DNA of 64,000 nucleotides from Thalia democratica (lineage: Eukaryota): NCBI GenBank assembly GCA_965202585.1, contig OZ241830.1:59892001-59956000 (forward strand). The letters are read 5' to 3'. This document shows positions 23,501 to 33,132 of this stretch, one piece after another; positions within the stretch are counted from its first letter, which is position 1, and the number at the start of each line of letters is the position of its first letter. Below the pieces are notes generated by a model. It ran no database searches. It saw only the letters and a list, made by a program, of their open reading frames with translations, and was not told the origin of the DNA. The position numbers were made by a program, and so were the translations under genes.

Positions 23501-26500
23501 TTGATGTATACAAAGGGAATTTTTACTTCCAGCCAAATCCTACTGGATTGCCTAATTACGAAACAAGTTTGTTTTTTTAAACTTTGCAGTAATTTAAGCG
23601 TAATGTATACTTTTGTTGATTCATATGATACAAGTTCCTATCTTAAACACAACGATATAAAATAAAAAAGAACGCCAAGACTTTAAAGTTTATATCAAAC
23701 ATTTTTGTTACAAGTTAGTTTTCACAGGCAACTCGGGTGCGAACTTCATGGATCGCGCGAACGACATGCTGTACGTAGTCCTAAGGGGTTCGGACGCAAT
23801 CGACATAAAAACTTCGGCGCTCATCCTCTTGAAGTTCGGATTTCCCGCCATTTCCGTTGACGAGTTCTTCGAAAACAATCTCGTCAGCAACCTGGCTACG
23901 TTAGTTAGATTTTTTTTTGAAAATCATGACGTGAAATACCAGTTTTTGTTTAAAATGTTTAACATTAGGTTTTAGAATAACATGACAATAAGTTTAAACA
24001 GGTTCATCAAAAGTATTAAATAATTTTTCTAAGATTAAACTTTACAAACTTAGTGTTTGGTTTAGATAACCGTGTTTTTTAATTTATTTACTTTTGCACA
24101 ATAGTTTTGAACAAAAGACTTAGAGTTCGACAAAACAATAGATAATTAATAAATTATTTAATTATAAATTTTTAAGCTTAGAATAGTAAGTTGTGCGTAA
24201 ATAGTCCTGATAATTTTTTTCTAACGTAAAAGTTTACACAGTTTTTAAAAACTTTATTATTTTTTCAGATACTTGAACGTTCCTCCCAGTAAAATCAAAA
24301 TCGTTGATATCGTTCGTGAAAATAGTAGAAGACGAAGGTTTGTTAAAAGTATTTTGAGTTTTAAATTCTAAAAATAATTTTCGTTTCTAAAAACCTACAA
24401 AACTTGTTTTTACTTAAGAAATAAATAATATTTATCCGTTTTAACTATAAAAGTCTTTTTTTTAATTTTACTGACTATACAAAAAACGCTCGTATAAACA
24501 GATCAACAGATGATGATCAACAAAATGACAATGATGAAGGAATTGTTGAATTTACCTTTGAGTTGGATGAATCAGTTGTTTCGGAAGAAATAATTGTAGA
24601 CGAGAAAACTAATTCATCCAAAGAATACCGCCGTCTAGTTGCTGAAAAACTTAACAACAAGACAAGCCAAGTTTGTAGAAATATTTTTAGTAGAAATTTA
24701 CAACTAATAAACTCTATCTATGATCGTATCTAAATATCAAGTTTTATTAACGTTTTAAGCTATACATTTTAAACTAAATTAATTAGCAGTTTTTAAAGCA
24801 AATAAAACATAAATGTATCAAAACACCCAGCAATAAACATTTTTAAGATGATTCAAGACTTCCAAACTGGCAAACTGAACGAAGCTCTAAATGTTTCCTC
24901 TTTAATATTCGAAGCGACAGAATCCACAGCTGATGTGTTGCCTCCGAAAAATGGTTTGTTTCTACTTAATATACAAAATTAACATAACTATTTGTTGCTA
25001 GTATAGTTTATGCTTTGCCTATTTAATAAAAAAAATACTGAAAATGTACAACAAACAAAAAACAGCCAGCGAAGTAGTTGAAGTACAAACAGTGATTCTA
25101 TTGCCGAGCAAACTAGTAGTTGAACTGGAATCCAGTACAATCCAAGAGTTGAACAACGACCTTCAAGCTAAAGTCGGCTTAGTAGACAATGAGGTCATAA
25201 CTAGTTCAAACTATAACTTTTTCGTATGATTTTAAATCCATAAAATTTCGTATAAAATTCATAAAAGTATCCTTCCAAGTTGTTAGTTGTTGATTCATAT
25301 TTACATTTTAAATCTAAACGCAATCTTACTCAGGGATCACCTGTTACAAGGCTGGGTGGAGAATGGATCGCTAAAATTAGTTTAGATTCTCAACAACAAC
25401 AGCAACAACAACAAACAGAAGCAAAGTTACTTGGACCTACAAATGTTACCTTCATAGATGTAAGTATATTTTTATTATAATATAGTTTAATTTTTACATA
25501 AATTTTTCTATAATAAAAAATAAAACTTATAATATTTAAGATTAGCTTGAAAACTAAAAAAAAGTTTTATTTTTTTAATTATAACTTATTTAAACAGGGT
25601 TTCGCAAACTTTAAACTCGCCATTGATAAAGCTGGAAGCCACACTTTGAGATTCAATGTAAGTTTGTCATTGTAAATTTAAATTTTTAGCAAGATTATTT
25701 AAACAATTAAGTGCAGTTAAGTTTATAACTTTAAATATACTTTATCGTTTATTACTTTACTGGACTTATTTTAAAGTTTATAAAACAATTACATTTAAAA
25801 CAGTAAATATAATTAAGTTTTAAAGTGCAGAAAAAGTAATTGTATTTATAAAAGTGCTTTAGAATGTTTTTATTCTAAAACTAAACTATCTTTTGCTCTA
25901 ACAATTACAAAATAACAAACAACTACTACAGATTATAGAACCAACAACTATATCTATTCCTGAAGTTATTGTACAAGTAGAAGTTACTACAAGAGAAGTG
26001 AATGCAAAAATAAACAATTTAGAAAGCTTTAAGCAAAACATTAGTCTTATTGAGAAAAATGAAAATATTACTTTGGATATTCAACTTATAGACAACAGTG
26101 GTCAAAATCTTAGTAACATTGGTTACAAGGTTAATTTTACTTGTTTGTTTAGTTTGTGAACCTTAAAGCTCAACTTCAAATGTTTGAAGTAGTTTATAAC
26201 GCAAACTTAACACAAAACTATAAATAGTAGTAAAAATATTTTTCAATATTTTGACTATAAACTTAATGGTAATTAGATTAAAAACTTTGCAGTGAAATCT
26301 TTAGATGAGTTATACTATAATAGCCAATTCTACAAGTAATCAACCTACACTACATAGTTATTGCCACTATATATTCTAAAACAGTTGAAAATAAAACAGC
26401 AGTAATATTGCAAAGTGGTTTTTAAGTAATTTTAAAAACAAAACAAATTTTACAGGGAAATAGTTGGAAAGCAAAAGTTGAACTTGCTGACCCACAAAGT

Positions 26501-29500
26501 GGAGCTTCAATAAACGGTCAATCTTACGATTTCGACGAAGAAACTGGAATTTCTGTAACAGAGGGAATGAAGTTGACAGGAACAACTGATTATTACAGTT
26601 ACATTTTCAAAGTTACTGTTTACACACAACCTGAAGTTTACCAACCAATCATTATTTACACGCCCAGCGTCAGAGTATGTTTAAGACTTTTCAAAGAACT
26701 TGTCATATGATATTTGTTTAGTTTCTATAACTAGATTGCTTTTTTAACAATAGAATCATTATTTTTTACCATGCTTCAAATAGTCTCTTTACTTAAAAAT
26801 ACCTTTTAAAACTAAACATATTTGTATAAAGGAATAAAGCGTTGACTTACTAAGTTGAAAAATAGTATCATTTGTAAGTACATACTGCAAACTTTTATAG
26901 TTTTTAAAAGTAAATGTTATGTTATTCTCAAATTATTACAAGTCTTACTTCAATACATTAATTAGTAAATATTTTTTTCTTAGGTTTATTCAATGGACAC
27001 CCAAGTCCATGAAAACACGACTACACAAACAAACTACAAGTATGTTTTTTTTTTGATTTATATTTATAGTTAGTGCTATTTTAAGTAGGTTCACTAACGT
27101 ACGAATGCAACAAGATTTTATCAAATATTTAATTGCTTTTATAAACTAACAACGAGTTTTTTTAATAAAAATTGTATTTAAAAGAATGAAGCTAGCATCT
27201 AAGGAACAAAATAGTCAGCAGCAAAATAGTCAGCAACAAAATAGTCAGCAGCAAAATAGTCAGCAGCAACAAAACGAAATGATGTTGAGTGAAAACATTG
27301 TTGACGAAATGATCGCTTCATCTTTCAACAATTTCTTAGTTGATTTGATATCAGGAAATGTTTCAAAACATACTTATGTAGAAAAAGTAATTGCAACTAC
27401 AACTGGTTTGTTATGCTTATGTTTTTCGCAATAAGTTAACTTTTAGATATTTAGTTTTAAATTTTACTAAAGTTTTTGTTGTAGGATTTGCTTTTTTTTT
27501 TGATGATAACTTTTGTTTTTTATTAAGTGCTCAAATAAAAAAAATATGGATTTGTTATTATATTAACTATAAATTTTTGATTATAATTTTGTTTGCGTTT
27601 CAGATGGGAAAACAGAAGTTGAGTTTTCTTTAGCTTCAACAAACATGGATAATGCGTTAATTGCTCAGAAACTATTGGAAAGTAAACTTAAAGATAGCAC
27701 ATTCACTCACATGGGAGAATCATTTGCATCAGTTGACCCTGATTGCTATTTGGAAATTGAAGGAGAATGTAGTTCTCCATCAACAACTACAACAACACCA
27801 GAACCAACTACAACAACAACTCAAAAACCAACTACAACAACCACTCAAGAACAAACTACAACAACAACTCCAGAACCAACAACAACAACTCAAAAACCAA
27901 CTACAACAACAACTCAAAAACCAACTACAACAACAACTCCAGAACCAACTACAACATCAACTCAAAAACCAACTACAACAACAACAACTCAAAAACCAAC
28001 TACAACAACGACTCCAGAACCAACTACAAAAACTCAAAAACAAACTACAACAACAACTCAAAAACCAACTACATCAACAACTCCAGAACCAACTACAACA
28101 ACAACTCCAGAACCAACTACAACAACAACTCCAGAACCAACTACAACAACAACTCCAGAACCAACTACAACAACAACTCAAAAACCAACTACAACAACAA
28201 CTCAAAAACAAACTACAACAACAACTCCAGAACCAACTACAACAACAACTCCAGAACCAACTACAACAACAACTACAGAACCAACTACAACAACAACAAC
28301 TCAAAAACAAACTACAACAACAACTCAAAAACCAACTACAACAACAACACCAGAACCAACTACAACAACAACTCAAAAACAAACTACAACAACAACTCCA
28401 GAACCAACTACAACAACTCAAAAACAAACTACAACANNNNNNNNNNNNNNNNNNNNNNNNNNNNNNNNNNNNNNNNNNNNNNNNNNNNNNNNNNNNNNNN
28501 NNNNNNNNNNNNNNNNNNNNNNNNNNNNNNNNNNNNAAGCATTAAATTTAATTTTTAAACTTTGAAAACAAAAAAAAAATAATATTTTTAGAATGGTTTA
28601 AACATACATGTGTTAATAAAAGTAAAGCCTATATCATGTAGACTAGCCTAGAAAATTAGACATTAAAAAAATAGTTTCAATTGTAAATAACTCATTTAAA
28701 CAGGGTTTTGCAAACTTTAAACTTGCCGTTGATAAAGCTGGAAGCCAAACTTTAAGATTTAAAGTAAGTTTTTTAATGTATAATTTCTCGTTTAAATATT
28801 TTTGATAAACTAAATATACTAAACAAACTAAATTTTTATAAAGTTTTTGAAATAATTAAAGTTTAAGCTTAAAAAAGTATGTTTTTTTTTGATCCATTAA
28901 CAAAACATATTTACTTTTTTGTATAATAAAATTATAATAACTTAGAACATGTTTTTAAAATTCAAAGAATATTATTTACATGTTTTTTAAAGAAGTAATT
29001 TATTGTTATTAGTTTAATATTTAAAAATTAAAATCGATTGCTTCATTAATTATTTATAACAAAAACGACTTATTTAGATTATAAAACCAACAAGTGCATC
29101 TATTGCTGAAGTTACTGTGCCAATAGAAGTAACCAAAAGAGAAGTTAATGCGAAGATAAACAATTTAGAAAGCTTTAAGCAAAGCAACAGTTTTATTGAG
29201 AAAAATGAAAATATTACTTTGGAATTTTTACTTACAGACAAAAATGGTCAAAGTCTTAGTAATATTGGTTACAACGTAAGTTTTACGTGTTTTAGTTGAC
29301 AAATACTAAACTTATTGTTTTGAAAAATGCTTTAAAGCAAAATTTTAACTTTTAAGTTTAATAATTTTTATTACTAAACCAACGCGAGTTTCAAAATAAA
29401 CTATCAACGCTAATTTTTTTAAAAGTTTTTCAATTAAAGACGTTAAAGTGACCGAACACTTTTGTAAAAGAAAAACTATTTAGTTTATAAGTATTTCTAA

Positions 29501-32500
29501 CTGTACATAACATACAAAATGGTTGTCAGTATGGTTTTTTGTATTGAAATAAATAGAGAAATTTTTAGCAGTATTATGTGCACATTATTCTTGAACTTAG
29601 TTCATCTAAACTTAACACTAAGTACGTATAAAATACATACAGGGAAATAGTTGGAAAGCAAAAGTTGAGCTTGCTGACCCACAAAGTCGAGCTTCAATAA
29701 ACGGTCAATCTTACGATTTCGATGAAGAAACTGGAATTTCAGTAACAGAGGGAATGAAGTTGACAGGAACAACTGATTATTACAGTTACATTTTCAAAGT
29801 TACTGTTTACACACAACCTGAAGTTTACCAACCAATCATTATTTACACACCCAGCGTTAGAGTATGTTTAACACTTTTAGAACATCATTAGCGTAAATTT
29901 TAACTTTAAAGTTAAAAAGTCATTATCGTTCTTTTTTACTTAGAACAGTGGTCGGCAGCCTTATGTAACTCGCAGGCAAATTTTTTCTAGGAATAAATGC
30001 TTGCGGGCCGCACTATTTAGAAAAAACTTTTCAGGGCCGAATTTATTTAAAAAAAGTTCTACTAATCAGTAGAAAAATACTATTTAAGATTTAACATATG
30101 TTAAATTAAGCTATACTAGAACACTAATAAAGTGTATTTATTGAATTAAGAGCCTAACTGCAATTTTTATTACAAAACCTCTAATTTTCATTATTTTTTA
30201 AATGTATACTTTTGGCTAAAAAGGAGTTCGCGGGCCGCCTTTTGGCCTGCGGGCCGCAGTTTACCGACCCCTGACTTAGAACGGTAATTTGACAAAAAAA
30301 TTGAAAAATAAATAAAACGTTTACTCACTACATTTAAAATTAATATATCTCAAGTGTAACTTATATAGTTGGATTGATTTTTTAAGAACAGAGCTATGCA
30401 ACTTTACCATGTTTTAATTAGTCTCTTTACTTAAAACAACTTTTTAAAATTAAATATATTGGTATAAAGGAATAAAATATTGACTCACTGAGTTAAACAA
30501 TAATATCACATGAAAGTACACACTGTAAACATTTTTAGTTTCAAAAGTAAATTTCATTTTATTCCTAAATTATTACTAGTCATACTTAAAAACATTAATT
30601 AATATATTACTTTAGGTTTATTCAATGAACAATCAAGTGCATGAAAACACGACAACACAAACAAACTACAAGTATGTTTTTTAATTTTAATGAATTTCAT
30701 GAAAGTTAGTTTATGTAAATACAATAAGTTTTTGAATCAAAAAATGTTTTCTTAACTTAATTTTTTTTTTTAATTACCAGTGGGTTGTTTTAATTTAATT
30801 AATTTTTTTCTACAAAAGAATGAAGCTAGCATCTAAGGAACAAAATAGTCAGCAACAAAATAGTCAGCAGCAAAATAGTCAGCAGCAAAACAGTCAGCAG
30901 CAATCGAACGAAATGATGTTGAGTGAAAACATTGTTGACGAAATGATTGCTTCATCTTTTAACAATTTCTTAGTTGATTTGATATCAGGAAATGTTTCAA
31001 AACATACTTATGTAGAAAATGTACTTGCAACTACATCTGGTTAGTTGTGCTTAAATATAACTTCAATAAGCTCACAAGAAGTTGTTTAACTTCTAAAGTT
31101 TTAAATATAGGTTTTAAGAAATTGTTTTGGATATATATATATTCGTATAAAACAAAGTTTAACAAAAGTTTTAGTTTTTAAATATCAAACGTTATTTCTA
31201 AAAGTTTTCCTTATTGTAAACTTTTGACTATAAAAACATTTCCAACAAAAAGATTTGTACTAAGTTAGTTGCAATATGTAATACTTCGAAGATTTTTATA
31301 TTTTAACATGTTTCTTTTAATTTAAAACAGTATACTAAAACAAGTCGTAATTAGATAGAAATAAGGTTAAGCATTTAAAACAATATATATATATGAATAC
31401 AGTAAACGCAACTTTTTAGATCTTAAGTCAGCATTTTAGGACATATTGCTTTATTTATAATTTATGTTTTTTTTTTTATTGCGTGCTAAAAAGTTTACTA
31501 ATAGTCATAGTTTTCAACATTTAAAACTAAAACATAATACCTATAACTCTATTAACATTTCAGATGGAAACACAGAAATTGAGTTTTCTTTAGCTTCAAC
31601 AAACAATAAAAATGCGTTAGTTGCTCAGAAATTACTCGAAAGAAAACTAAAAAATAGCACATTCACTTACATTGGAAAATCATTTGCATCAGTTGATCCA
31701 GATTGCTATTTGGAAATTGAAGGAAAATGCAGGTCTGCAACTTCATCAAAACCTGAGGTTTGTAAGAGTTTCTTACATAATCTTATTCCCTTAATTTTGA
31801 AATGAGTTTTATTTTTGAGGTTTTAAAGTAATTAGCGATTACTTTATGATTTATTGTGTTTAAATAAAGGCAGCAGTTAATTTTCCCGATGAAGATCCAA
31901 AAGCATCTACGCATTGAAAAATGTTTTTATGACCATAAAAAGTAGTTTTATTTCTTATAAATACCTTATTCACAGTGGGGGAAATGGCAAACGGGACTCG
32001 TAGCAAGCGGGTGCGCATTCGCAGTGGTGGCAGTATTCGGTGGTTCGATGTACAAAAATAACCACAAAAACTATATAAACAGTAAGTTTACTTTGCTAAT
32101 CTTTAATAAAGTTGTTACAATGAAGGAGATAAACAGTTGACACTTCCTATGTAAAAAGTTATAAGTATCATTTTCATGCAAATTAAAAGCTAAAACAATT
32201 GTTATCCGAAACTTTAAACGAGTTTAGAAAATTGAACTTTCAGTAAAACTTTTGTTTTACTTTTCAATTGAATTTATCAAAATTATTTTCTGGTAATCAT
32301 AAATTTTAGTTATAAGTTTATAGAAAAATAAGTATAATTAAAGTGTTTAAAACTTTAGGTACACTTACATGTGGATTAACTCTTTTTCGTAAGATTTAAA
32401 ACTAAATTGTTTAAAACTAAACTTATAGACTAAACATAATTGAAAACTTGAGCTCGCAGTTCGTGTACTTTTTATAAACATAATTTAACTCATACAGGTT

Positions 32501-33132
32501 TAGATGACGATTGTTCTACTCTATCTTCATCAAAAGCTTGGTCAAGGTAAGCAATTTTTTGCTTTGTCATTTCGAAATAATCAGTTAGAAAATAATTAAT
32601 AGACCAAGTTTAGTTAAAAATAATGTTTATATAGTTTTATTAAGTAATAAACTTATATTAAAATTTTTCAGCATGGAAAGCGTCAAAAAAGGTAAGTAGG
32701 TTTAAACAGTTTTATAAGTTTCAATATTTTTTATACTGTTTGTACTTTAAGTTAGAAGATTTGCGTCAAAAAAAATTTAAATTATAATGTTTTACACATT
32801 TGTACTTTAATTTTAGTACATACTATATTATGATATAAATTTTAAGTAGTATCAACTTTATGAACATTAATTCTAGTTTAATAAAAAAAGTTCCCATAAA
32901 AGATGTTTGTATACAAGTTCAAATAATTTTAACTTAGTAATTTTATTTAAATATTATTTTCAATGTTTGGTATTTTTGCAAAAAGCTTGTTGAAATCTAT
33001 TAGAAAATTATAAGTAAGTACTTAGTTTTTATTAAAAAAGTACTATTGTTTATTTTGTTTAGAAAAACTTATTTTTTAACAGGTTCACCTAGGTATAAAA
33101 CGGATTCTAGTTATGAAGTTATTGTAAACTAA
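91..33132 (+). CDS. PKHD1L1: Fibrocystin-L / PKHD1L1-like giant single-pass membrane protein (5' part lies upstream of the window; 78 exons traced)
   Basis: Phase-consistent exon chain: 91-262,429-588,842-994,1771-1893,2078-2323,2723-2906,3085-3311,3651-3833,3990-4153,4421-4517,4611-4724,4869-5029,5224-5366,5654-5772,5951-6106,6176-6289,6349-6576,6850-7022,7242-7326,7490-7645,7904-8069,8240-8360,8523-8660,8868-9008,9296-9487,9704-9821,9895-9984,10127-10254,10467-10609,10794-10891,11562-11720,11984-12215,12504-12765,13026-13164,13366-13514,13976-14165,14361-14514,15101-15310,15879-16047,16220-16402,16611-16719,16850-17033,17693-17859,18121-18204,18648-18881,19344-19447,19651-19780,20021-20190,20474-20649,20907-21058,21192-21357,21570-21681,22023-22149,22492-22668,23093-23270,23481-23566,23728-23899,24269-24337,24502-24670,24848-24953,25066-25193,25334-25459,25598-25657,25932-26129,26456-26674,26984-27039,27185-27405,27604-(gap),28704-28763,29078-29275,29643-29861,30616-30671,30819-31039,31564-31757,31976-32081,32498-32546,32672-32691,33083-33132 (TAA). 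Peptides recognised as PKHD1L1-like: QPQVQVFINNIPSVC, DRWSSIFTWGG, QAFRLGRYPIHWH, STSLLNDDVTPAAYWVTNPNN, AAGGTHFGFWYRM, INPSDCVDMECDA, RRLSPVAL, GPQDHGWCAGYTCQKRLS. Continuity across the N gap is assumed. Confidence 0.93.
1144..1496. mobile_element. hAT (Buster/Charlie-like) MITE in an intron
   Basis: TIRs TAGGGGTCGGCAGCC / CCGACCTTTG, subterminal GCGGGCCGC motifs, 8-bp TSD TACTAGGA/TACTAGGG (7/8, nnnTAnnn). Same family as 29946-30273. Confidence 0.8.
8580..14514 (+). other. First G8 domain plus parallel beta-helix (TMEM2/CEMIP-like) block
   Basis: DRWSSIFTWGG...VLLDTHTKVLVMLLIDGGKLIFD...GAKTLAVRDGTLDLHG (G8), followed by AEVGLLSRNIVVRG, RYPIHWH, FFIEDGIE and GWFGLWIF, collinear with the PKHD1L1 family as I recall it. 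Confidence 0.85.
10900..11322. mobile_element. MITE with about 55-bp internally repetitive TIRs (MULE/foldback-like)
   Basis: Left GGTGCACGACTATTCAAATTCGGACAATTCAAATTCCAACAATTCAAATTCTTAA; the right end is its reverse complement with 4 mismatches. Flanking direct repeat GTTCGTTT at 10892-10899 and 11323-11330. Partial solo TIR at about 37361-37386. Confidence 0.8.
17123..17466. mobile_element. hAT (Buster/Charlie-like) MITE in an intron
   Basis: Ends CAGTGAATCTTAATCT / GGTTAACAAACCGCTG, perfect 8-bp TSD ATCTAAAA (17115-17122, 17467-17474). Internal perfect palindrome GGGGTAAATTTACCCC at 17139-17154 and repeated GGGGTAAAT motifs. Confidence 0.8.
19140..19261 (+). repeat. Dispersed repeat family A, copy 1
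   Basis: Core ACGAAAAAACCTTTCGGTTAT and 3' GTCCAGGACA are shared with 39727-39817 (+), 41766-41892 (-, one A fewer) and 53344-53420 (+, partial). Confidence 0.8.
25598..27779 (+). repeat. C-terminal module copy 1 (6 exons: Ig-like strands, QQQNS repeat, putative SEA-like domain)
   Basis: Exons of 60, 198, 219, 56 and 221 nt plus the 5' part of the exon at 27604. Each has a same-length counterpart at 28704-31757, and the introns are also alignable (e.g. 26760-26980 vs 30400-30615). Confidence 0.85.
27780..28436 (+). repeat. Mucin-like Thr-rich coding repeat, (PEPTTTTT)/(QKPTTTTT) units of about 21-27 nt, at least about 219 codons
   Basis: In frame with the exon starting at 27604 (DGKTEVEF...EGECSSPSTTTTTPEPTTTTTQKP...). 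Open until the gap; no donor site is visible before it. Confidence 0.88.
28437..28536. other. Assembly gap (100 N, true size unknown)
   Basis: Run of exactly 100 N, starting inside the mucin repeat. Confidence 0.99.
28704..31757 (+). repeat. C-terminal module copy 2 (6 exons, no mucin extension)
   Basis: Exons 28704-28763, 29078-29275, 29643-29861, 30616-30671, 30819-31039 and 31564-31757 are all open, with intact GT-AG sites and the same phases as copy 1. Confidence 0.85.
29946..30273. mobile_element. hAT (Buster/Charlie-like) MITE, present only in module copy 2
   Basis: TIRs CAGTGGTCGGCAGCC / CCGACCCCTG, perfect TSD ACTTAGAA (29938-29945, 30274-30281). Alignable along its length to 1144-1496; absent from the homologous intron 26675-26983. 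Confidence 0.88.
31976..33132 (+). other. Transmembrane exon and 48-aa cytoplasmic tail of fibrocystin-L, including a 20-nt micro-exon at 32672-32691
   Basis: WGKWQ-TGLVASGCAFAVVAVFGGSMY-KNNHKNYINSLDDDCSTLSSSKAWSSMESVKKGSPRYKTDSSYEVIVN*. Four exons; three of the donors are GTAAG and all phases are consistent. Confidence 0.8.

Follow-up and report, generated by a model that had tools for sequence, protein, structure and literature searches.

A tandemly duplicated membrane-proximal cassette and a threonine-rich array at the 3' end of a fibrocystin-L gene in Thalia democratica

The 64,000-nucleotide (nt) stretch of Thalia democratica DNA analyzed here, referred to as the window (GenBank assembly GCA_965202585.1, contig OZ241830.1, positions 59,892,001 to 59,956,000 of the forward strand), carries one long gene on the + strand whose 5' end lies before position 1 and whose 3' end is at position 32552, and by its sequence this is the 3' end of a tunicate fibrocystin-L (PKHD1L1-family) gene. 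On the + strand, the end of the gene is laid out as a six-exon cassette of 309 amino acids (aa), a Thr/Pro array, a 100-N assembly gap, a second copy of the cassette, a transmembrane (TM) exon and a short tail. A first-pass annotation of this DNA had claimed a module, a Thr array, a second module copy, a C-x6-C pair and a TM segment between 25598 and 31757, and all of these elements were found at those places. We put forward the proposal, to which we give slightly better than even chances, that the tandem cassettes and a mucin-type stalk between them are parts of one fibrocystin-L protein. Judged from sequence comparisons, the unusual part is the duplication together with the Thr-rich array, and it is a rare, convergent, lineage-specific variant of known parts.

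Proteins of this family have a large ectodomain with TIG/IPT repeats, G8 domains and CEMIP/TMEM2-type beta-helices, followed by one C-terminal TM segment and a short tail; in the window, the domain scan of the ectodomain bears on the beta-helix exons. Two upstream exons give CEMIP_beta-hel Pfam matches, and one beta-helix exon used as the query against 1.84 billion representative proteins retrieved fibrocystin-L proteins from many invertebrates, the best full-length relatives all bearing that name. The nearest full-length relative is a fibrocystin-L-like protein of the ascidian Clavelina lepadiformis (XP_076825620.1). The beta-helix matches, the C-terminal TM segment and the tail of ~30 aa, the last two supported by RNA contigs, are those of the fibrocystin-L/PKHD1L1 family. 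The surrounding sequence has the composition of AT-rich eukaryotic DNA (GC ~27% around the cassettes), and window DNA is present also in marine metagenomes and metatranscriptomes, which makes the tunicate probably a pelagic one. By gene counts, the family is expanded in tunicates: the genome carries at least four complete fibrocystin-L genes, the upstream exons of the others being 51–92% identical to those of the window, and Clavelina has at least seven.

All exons of our gene model have AG/GT borders, and most of these borders agree with marine metatranscriptome RNA contigs. The duplicated unit is ~3 kb long and in phase 0 at both ends. In copy 1 it is opened by exon 1 (25598–25657, phase 0/0), which encodes the last 20 aa (GFANFKLAIDKAGSHTLRFN) of the preceding immunoglobulin (Ig)-like domain, is 88% identical to 28704–28763 and aligns with the GxANFTDL motif of orthologues. 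The first-pass annotation had let the unit start after this GFANFKLA exon; with the start moved to the exon itself, inside that Ig-like domain, and the 56-nt exon below included, the cassette comes to 309 aa. Exon 2 (25932–26129) encodes the N-terminal half of a second Ig-like domain and aligns with orthologues, and marine metagenome contigs encode peptides 71–74% identical to it; exon 3 (26456–26674) supplies the C-terminal half (GNSWKAKV...), with an RNA contig over 26456–26670. A small exon of 56 nt (VYSMDTQVHENTTTQTNY-, 26984–27039), encoding a linker and the probable first strand of a SEA-like domain, ends in phase 2 and matches the acceptor at 27185. We recognized it because it is a conserved exon in two paralogues on two other chromosomes of the same genome (loci L003 and L005, below) and because its inclusion makes the phase fit at the stronger exon 4 acceptor; a model lacking it, with exon 4 starting at 27192 in copy 1 and 30826 in copy 2, was rejected as it left the SEA-like domain without its first strand. 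Exon 4 (27185–27405, RNA contig over 27304–27404 with 1 mismatch) encodes an NSQQQ x4 insert (27207–27269) and then helix 1 and strand 2 of the SEA-like domain, and the globular part of exon 5 (27604–27776, RNA contigs over 27603–27796) encodes strand 3, helix 2 and strand 4, followed by the C-x6-C hairpin.

The second copy repeats this order. Its exon 1 (28704–28763) is found in an RNA contig spliced both to upstream letters and to exon 2 (29078–29275), which is itself covered by RNA contigs; exon 3 (29643–29861) follows, and the 56-nt small exon (30616–30671) lies in a bin of RNA depth, 30598–30786, that is free of other exons. Exon 4 (30819–31039) again encodes the NSQQQ x4 insert and the start of the SEA-like domain, with an RNA contig over 30825–30903 and a joint from 31035 to 31563, and exon 5 (31564–31757) encodes the remaining SEA-like domain, the C-x6-C pair and a 9-aa Ser/Thr linker, RSATSSKPE. 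The TM exon (...WQTGLVASGCAFAVVAVFGGSMY..., 31976–32081) is represented by an RNA contig, and the last coding exon (32498–32552), which holds the short cytoplasmic tail and the stop codon, is touched by a loose RNA contig end identical to 32500–32529. The joints seen in RNA contigs are those between exons 1 and 2 and exons 4 and 5 of copy 2, between its exon 5 and the TM exon (31757/31976, GT..AG, in two RNA runs), and between the TM exon and the last exon. Both copies are transcribed. Searches for spliced peptides, with exons 2 and 5 of copy 2 as queries, yielded nothing beyond metagenome fragments of genomic origin that read into introns.

The copies are 87% identical in protein and 85–97% identical per exon in DNA, exon 3 being the closest pair (97% in DNA, 99% in protein), and most of their intron sequence is unalignable. 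Over 309 codons, the synonymous divergence (dS) is 0.21 and the nonsynonymous divergence (dN) 0.065, with no stops, no frameshifts and all 12 splice-site pairs intact. A dS of this size is too large for the copies to be alleles, and the dN/dS of 0.31 together with the intact splice sites shows constraint on both of them.

The Thr/Pro array (27777–28436, + strand) is a direct continuation of copy 1 exon 5. It consists of a 24-nt unit present in 26.5 copies with 87% matches, and it is translated into 220 aa of 8-residue units of the PEPTTTTT/QKPTTTTT type (T 61%, P 15.5%, S 1.4%), that is, a Pro/Thr/Ser (PTS)-rich tandem repeat of the mucin type. Since it is interrupted by the gap (28437–28536, 100 N, a length that is merely estimated), its true size is at least 220 aa. 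In one RNA contig, copy 1 exon 5 continues into the array and is read there for 20 nt with no mismatches, and the visible array contains no GT dinucleotide, so that an mRNA entering it has no canonical donor by which to leave before the gap. It should be noted that all three reading frames are open in the array, and an open frame there is thus no evidence of selection. At the equivalent position copy 2 has only RSATSSKPE before the TM exon and Clavelina has a short Thr-rich linker; on this comparison, an expansion of such a linker is the best reading of the array. Judged from its composition alone, it is likely to be densely O-glycosylated.

The 167 nt that follow the gap (28537–28703, + strand) are AT-rich, contain a stop in the frame of the array and end in a CAG acceptor, that of copy 2 exon 1; by these sequence features the stretch is the end of an intron. 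In a continuous gene, the donor of the array exon must therefore lie within the gap. A join across it would be compatible in phase, as the homologous donor, that of copy 2 exon 5, is in phase 0 and so is the acceptor at 28704. From 28664 onwards the stretch is firmly homologous to the intron before copy 1 exon 1, with a weaker gapped alignment extending to 28579. A simple tandem junction predicts that it should instead derive from the intron 3' of copy 2 exon 5; this origin was considered and set aside, the similarity to that intron being no greater than with shuffled sequences. Separately, a 799-nt contig from the run under a second organism label matches 28570–29214 and then continues for 154 nt that are unlike window positions 28537–28569, and hence the gap-adjacent sequence differs between the two samples.

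Among ~55 long relatives, an S/T/P-rich array was found only in a predicted protein of the scallop Argopecten irradians, XP_069115782.1 (4976 aa). There, two cassettes flank a PTTTTTT array of ~226 aa, the second one is followed by a short Thr linker and a TM segment, and the locus of 87.8 kb contains no N. Its order of cassette, array, cassette and TM segment is that of the window gene. In contrast, its cassettes are only 10–14% identical to the window copies, the duplicated unit of the scallop opens with the second Ig-like domain, the array is encoded by a separate exon that is fused to the beginning of copy B, and the G-S-I-I/V-V motif is kept. Maximum-likelihood analysis groups the scallop copies with each other (100/99) and likewise the window copies (100/100), the latter beside Clavelina; this within-species pairing indicates that the tunicate and scallop duplications were independent. 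The initial impression of an undescribed arrangement has to be tempered, as a RefSeq scallop protein with the same layout is already in the databases, even if we found no paper describing either the tunicate or the scallop architecture.

Based on these data, we propose the following hypothetical route to the window gene. The ancestral fibrocystin-L would have ended with the cassette, made up of the tail of one Ig-like domain, another complete Ig-like domain and a SEA/MAD-like domain; in tunicates, a C-x6-C hairpin of the disulfide type and a short Thr-rich linker come next, and then the TM helix. The six cassette exons were then duplicated in tandem, and it is their symmetrical phases that allow the cassette to be copied whole. 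The linker after copy 1, which no longer abutted the membrane, would have expanded by slippage of the 24-nt unit into a PTS array of at least 220 aa. The longest predicted product would comprise the TIG/G8/beta-helix head, cassette 1, the PTS stalk, cassette 2, the TM segment and the tail of ~30 aa. If the array is O-glycosylated, as is usual for such arrays, it would form a stiff spacer of ~50 nm or more, which would raise the head and cassette 1 off the membrane, with cassette 2 keeping the membrane-proximal Ig-SEA unit. Within this scheme, the exon structure, the duplication, the array, the transcription of both copies and the fold of the orthologous cassette come directly from the data, and we infer the join across the gap, the glycosylation and the function.

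The critical step is whether the array and copy 2 share one transcript. In an RNA contig, 53 unplaced upstream letters are followed by 28702–28763 and 29078–29183 with no mismatches, showing that an exon further upstream is spliced to copy 2 exon 1. This upstream exon ends in AG, the alignment extending over the final AG of the intron. The donor of copy 2 exon 5 also ends in AG, and the exon before copy 1 (ending at 25459) ends in AT; the AG ending would thus weakly favor a join to the array exon, an agreement to be met in 1 of 16 cases by accident. Several points weigh against a single long protein. The RNA evidence consists of contigs from environmental samples, and hence from other individuals. 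No read or contig was found that links the array to copy 2 exon 1, and the gap hides the end of the array, where a stop, a polyadenylation site or more exons may lie. In addition, copy 2 starts with an orphan 20-aa piece of an Ig-like domain. Furthermore, a metatranscriptome contig passes directly from copy 1 exon 4 into copy 2 exon 5 and on into the TM and last exons; it has 1 mismatch in 101 nt to copy 1 exon 4, and over these 101 nt there are 5 differences between the copies. The array and most of copy 2 are therefore absent from at least some mRNAs or alleles, and the contig reflects either alternative splicing around the array or, in wild populations, a recombinant allele with a single copy.

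The last of these observations opens the way to the strongest alternative, in which the duplication is real and the cassettes are alternative 3' ends or alternative exons, not parts of one long protein. An mRNA that skips the array would encode a membrane protein with a single cassette, and a second form ending in or after the array would be secreted or differently anchored; as a variant, the duplication would be polymorphic and unequal crossover would have produced a single-copy hybrid allele. The contig that bypasses the array is what this alternative predicts, donors and acceptors at homologous sites in the two copies could replace one another and are of equal phase, and the missing joint between array and copy 2 is in line with it. 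However, exons 1 and 2 of copy 2 are transcribed and are spliced to an upstream exon unlike the one before copy 1. These 5' exons would be useless if exon 4 of copy 1 were simply spliced to exon 5 of copy 2, but purifying selection acts on them, and the gene model of the scallop reads straight through both cassettes. We consider this alternative unlikely, though less so than the two that follow.

Far less probable, in our view, is that the arrangement is an artefact of assembly, in which divergent haplotypes were scaffolded side by side at the gap or two loci were misjoined. Assembly gaps are often flanked by false duplications, and copy 2 begins just after the gap, which is the typical site of one; the contig breaks off within a tandem repeat, and neither the size nor the content of the gap is known, all of which speak for such an error. 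On the other hand, the dS given above, a protein divergence of 13% and largely unalignable introns far exceed allelic divergence. In the best DNA run, the unitig specific to copy 1 (27592–27818) has a depth of 63 and that specific to copy 2 (31499–31854) a depth of 65, and both belong to the upper depth class (the lower class is 32–41; few unitigs are involved), which fits two loci, each on both haplotypes. Both copies were also found in the run under the second organism label, and each of the two exon-2 types is present in marine metagenome contigs. When exon 3 was searched against the complete 802-Mb assembly, the two window copies and three distant paralogues came up, and no further copy. 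In addition, copy 1 has no TM exon and copy 2 has no upstream part, so each flank needs the other. From these observations the copies look like real paralogues. That copy 1 exon 5 and the array are a decaying by-product of the duplication, rarely included in mRNA and without function, is the least probable account of all: the splice from exon 4 to exon 5 around them exists and all three array frames are open, but the globular part of exon 5 is intact, transcribed and constrained, the array stays in the frame of the exon over 220 codons and its variant units remain rich in Thr and Pro, and a parallel array exists in the scallop.

The preferred reading, one protein with both cassettes and the stalk, can be placed against the relatives of the cassette. 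An iterated cassette profile finds it in ~30 long representatives, and in ~22 invertebrate representatives the TM segment follows 268–298 aa after the GxANF motif, compared with ~320 aa after the cassette start in window copy 2. With phmmer, residues 1–291 of the window cassette match residues 2771–3056 of the Clavelina protein (E 1.5e-23), collinear in the alignment. Seven Clavelina paralogues have one cassette each, followed by the C-x6-C hairpin, a Thr-rich linker of 10–20 aa and the TM segment. Three paralogues in the same genome are complete fibrocystin-L genes that share the exon structure of the window gene; two of the three have a single cassette directly before the TM exon, and in the third the TM exon was not located. 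These loci are L003 (G000:C4:71418678-71421896), L005 (G000:C2:58224304-58227516) and one at G000 C2:311xxxxx. By these comparisons, the cassette is the standard C-terminal ectodomain of invertebrate fibrocystin-L and no new addition. The first-pass annotation had taken the module for a rebuilding of the protein, and this part of it falls on a point that it had itself named, namely that the module is common in invertebrate orthologues (the ~22 representatives, Clavelina and the same-genome paralogues).

Specifically, the invertebrate juxtamembrane cassette has in common with the window gene the GxANF... end of an Ig-like domain, a second Ig-like domain with W.GH.W, an alpha-beta domain and the TM segment, and the tunicate members, including the window gene, further share a G-N/K-T-E-V strand and the C-x6-C hairpin. 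The Clavelina-type relatives have one cassette and a linker of at most 10–20 aa, whereas the window gene has two cassettes, the array of at least 220 aa and the NSQQQ x4 insert. Vertebrate PKHD1L1 belongs to the same family and has the same head architecture, and it too contains a MAD/SEA-like domain. Published work already mentions SEA/MAD-like domains in fibrocystin-L (PMC11527881, PMC13566292); in mouse PKHD1L1, a MAD/SEA-like domain with a furin site occupies residues 3915–4058, upstream of the last Ig-like domain (PMC11527881), a position that differs from that in the window gene. The PKHD1L1 of the fish Amia aligns with the cassette profile over its first 63 positions only and stops shortly after that Ig-like domain and its GxANY... 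motif, in agreement with the earlier statement that vertebrate PKHD1L1 ends there; it is without the second Ig-like and the membrane-proximal SEA-like domain. As a separate observation, L003 and L005 carry dibasic furin-type sites (RSKR-S and RHRR-S) in the loop before SEA-like helix 1, at the place occupied by the NSQQQ x4 insert in the window gene. Cleavage at these sites would mimic SEA self-cleavage, and their presence recalls the furin site in the MAD-like domain of mouse PKHD1L1.

The fold of the cassette was addressed through the Clavelina orthologue, whose cassette was modeled by AlphaFold from a 30-row alignment that included the window exons. The model (predicted local distance difference test, pLDDT, 84; predicted template modeling score, pTM, 0.77) has an Ig beta-sandwich, a strand-helix-strand-strand-helix-strand domain and a terminal hairpin that bears the two cysteines. 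When the last domain of the model (residues 168–285 of the model) was compared with 48,161 solved chains, the best match was MUC16 SEA5 (Z 9.0, 106 of 122 residues aligned), followed by Trop2 (Z 8.7) and a murine MUC16-type SEA domain (Z 7.9); unrelated ferredoxin-like folds reach Z 7.2–8.4, so that the margin of MUC16 SEA5 is small, ~1 above them. The window SEA-like region scores 14–15 bits against a profile of the Clavelina SEA region, compared with 7.9 for the best of 500 shuffles. Three results run counter to a SEA assignment. The window region does no better than shuffles against the profile of the non-tunicate orthologues, a Pfam scan of the 30 cassette rows at E up to 0.1 gave no SEA match, and a profile of the alpha-beta domain found chance-level matches only among PDB sequences. 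Moreover, no SEA or Ig family rose above noise in Pfam scans of single exons and of the 30 cassette rows. The SEA-like character that was first suspected for the module end is thus supported indirectly, by the Clavelina model and its MUC16 SEA matches, and finds no echo in the Pfam SEA and PDB sequence searches. Most non-tunicate orthologues have G-S-I-V-V at the turn between strands 2 and 3, the position of SEA self-cleavage. The window copies have D-G-K-T-E-V and D-G-N-T-E-I and Clavelina has N-G-N-T-E-V, all without the serine; with G-K/N-T-E in place of G-S-I-V-V, the tunicate SEA-like domains are probably not self-cleaving.

Searched with Foldseek, the two-domain Clavelina model resembles PCDH15 EC-MAD12, CDH23 MAD28, dystroglycan, sarcoglycan and SorCS. 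PCDH15 EC11-MAD12, CDH23 EC27-MAD28, dystroglycan, the sarcoglycans and SorCS likewise have a beta-sandwich and a ferredoxin-like unit before the TM segment, but the likeness is at the level of fold only, with template modeling scores of 0.2–0.3 for the two-domain model. With the SEA membrane mucins MUC1 and MUC16, the predicted window protein would share a stalk of PTS tandem repeats, a membrane-adjacent SEA-type domain, a single TM segment and a short tail. There is, however, no detectable sequence relationship between them, and the window protein is without the G-S cleavage motif, is mostly a TIG/G8/beta-helix head and not mucin repeats, and has its array between two SEA-containing cassettes and not distal to all of them.

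Fibrocystin-L forms a coat on stereocilia in mammals, and its function elsewhere is largely unknown. The essence of our comparison is that invertebrate fibrocystin-L carries a fixed Ig-SEA cassette at the membrane, one that is missing from the single vertebrate protein examined (Amia), and that a short Thr-rich linker, once freed from the membrane, can become a long mucin-type spacer. A spacer of ~50 nm would alter the reach of the beta-helix head into glycocalyx or mucus, which is relevant to an animal that feeds with mucous nets and has ciliated epithelia. The independent scallop case suggests that such a design is selectable and not accidental. More tentatively, and at rather less than even chances, we propose that tunicate and scallop independently made a mucin-stalked fibrocystin-L by cassette duplication and linker expansion, and that in the tunicate splicing of copy 1 exon 4 onto copy 2 exon 5 would act as a switch between stalked and unstalked forms.

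A number of smaller features of the locus were also recorded. Exon 3 is 97% identical between the copies, compared with 85–91% in the neighboring exons, and at window positions 31035–31039, the end of copy 2 exon 4, a metatranscriptome contig has AAT where the window has TCT, a change of Ser to Asn; these are hints of gene conversion and of population polymorphism between the copies. A 15-nt tandem repeat encodes the NSQQQ x4 insert in both copies (27207–27269 and 30841–30903), and a poly-Gln run is encoded at 25390–25416, in the exon preceding copy 1. The inserts and the poly-Gln run are of low complexity and lie in surface loops of otherwise conserved domains. The third intron of copy 2 contains a very high-copy repeat at ~29980–30275, with loose ends bearing GGGCCGCA-type motifs and a summed unitig depth of 12,000–110,000 in both DNA runs, compared with ~100–300 elsewhere. 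Apparent DNA joints in the two genomic runs had sides of 21 nt and derived from this repeat, and they were not used. The repeat is probably a small transposable element, which would explain part of the greater length of the copy 2 intron.

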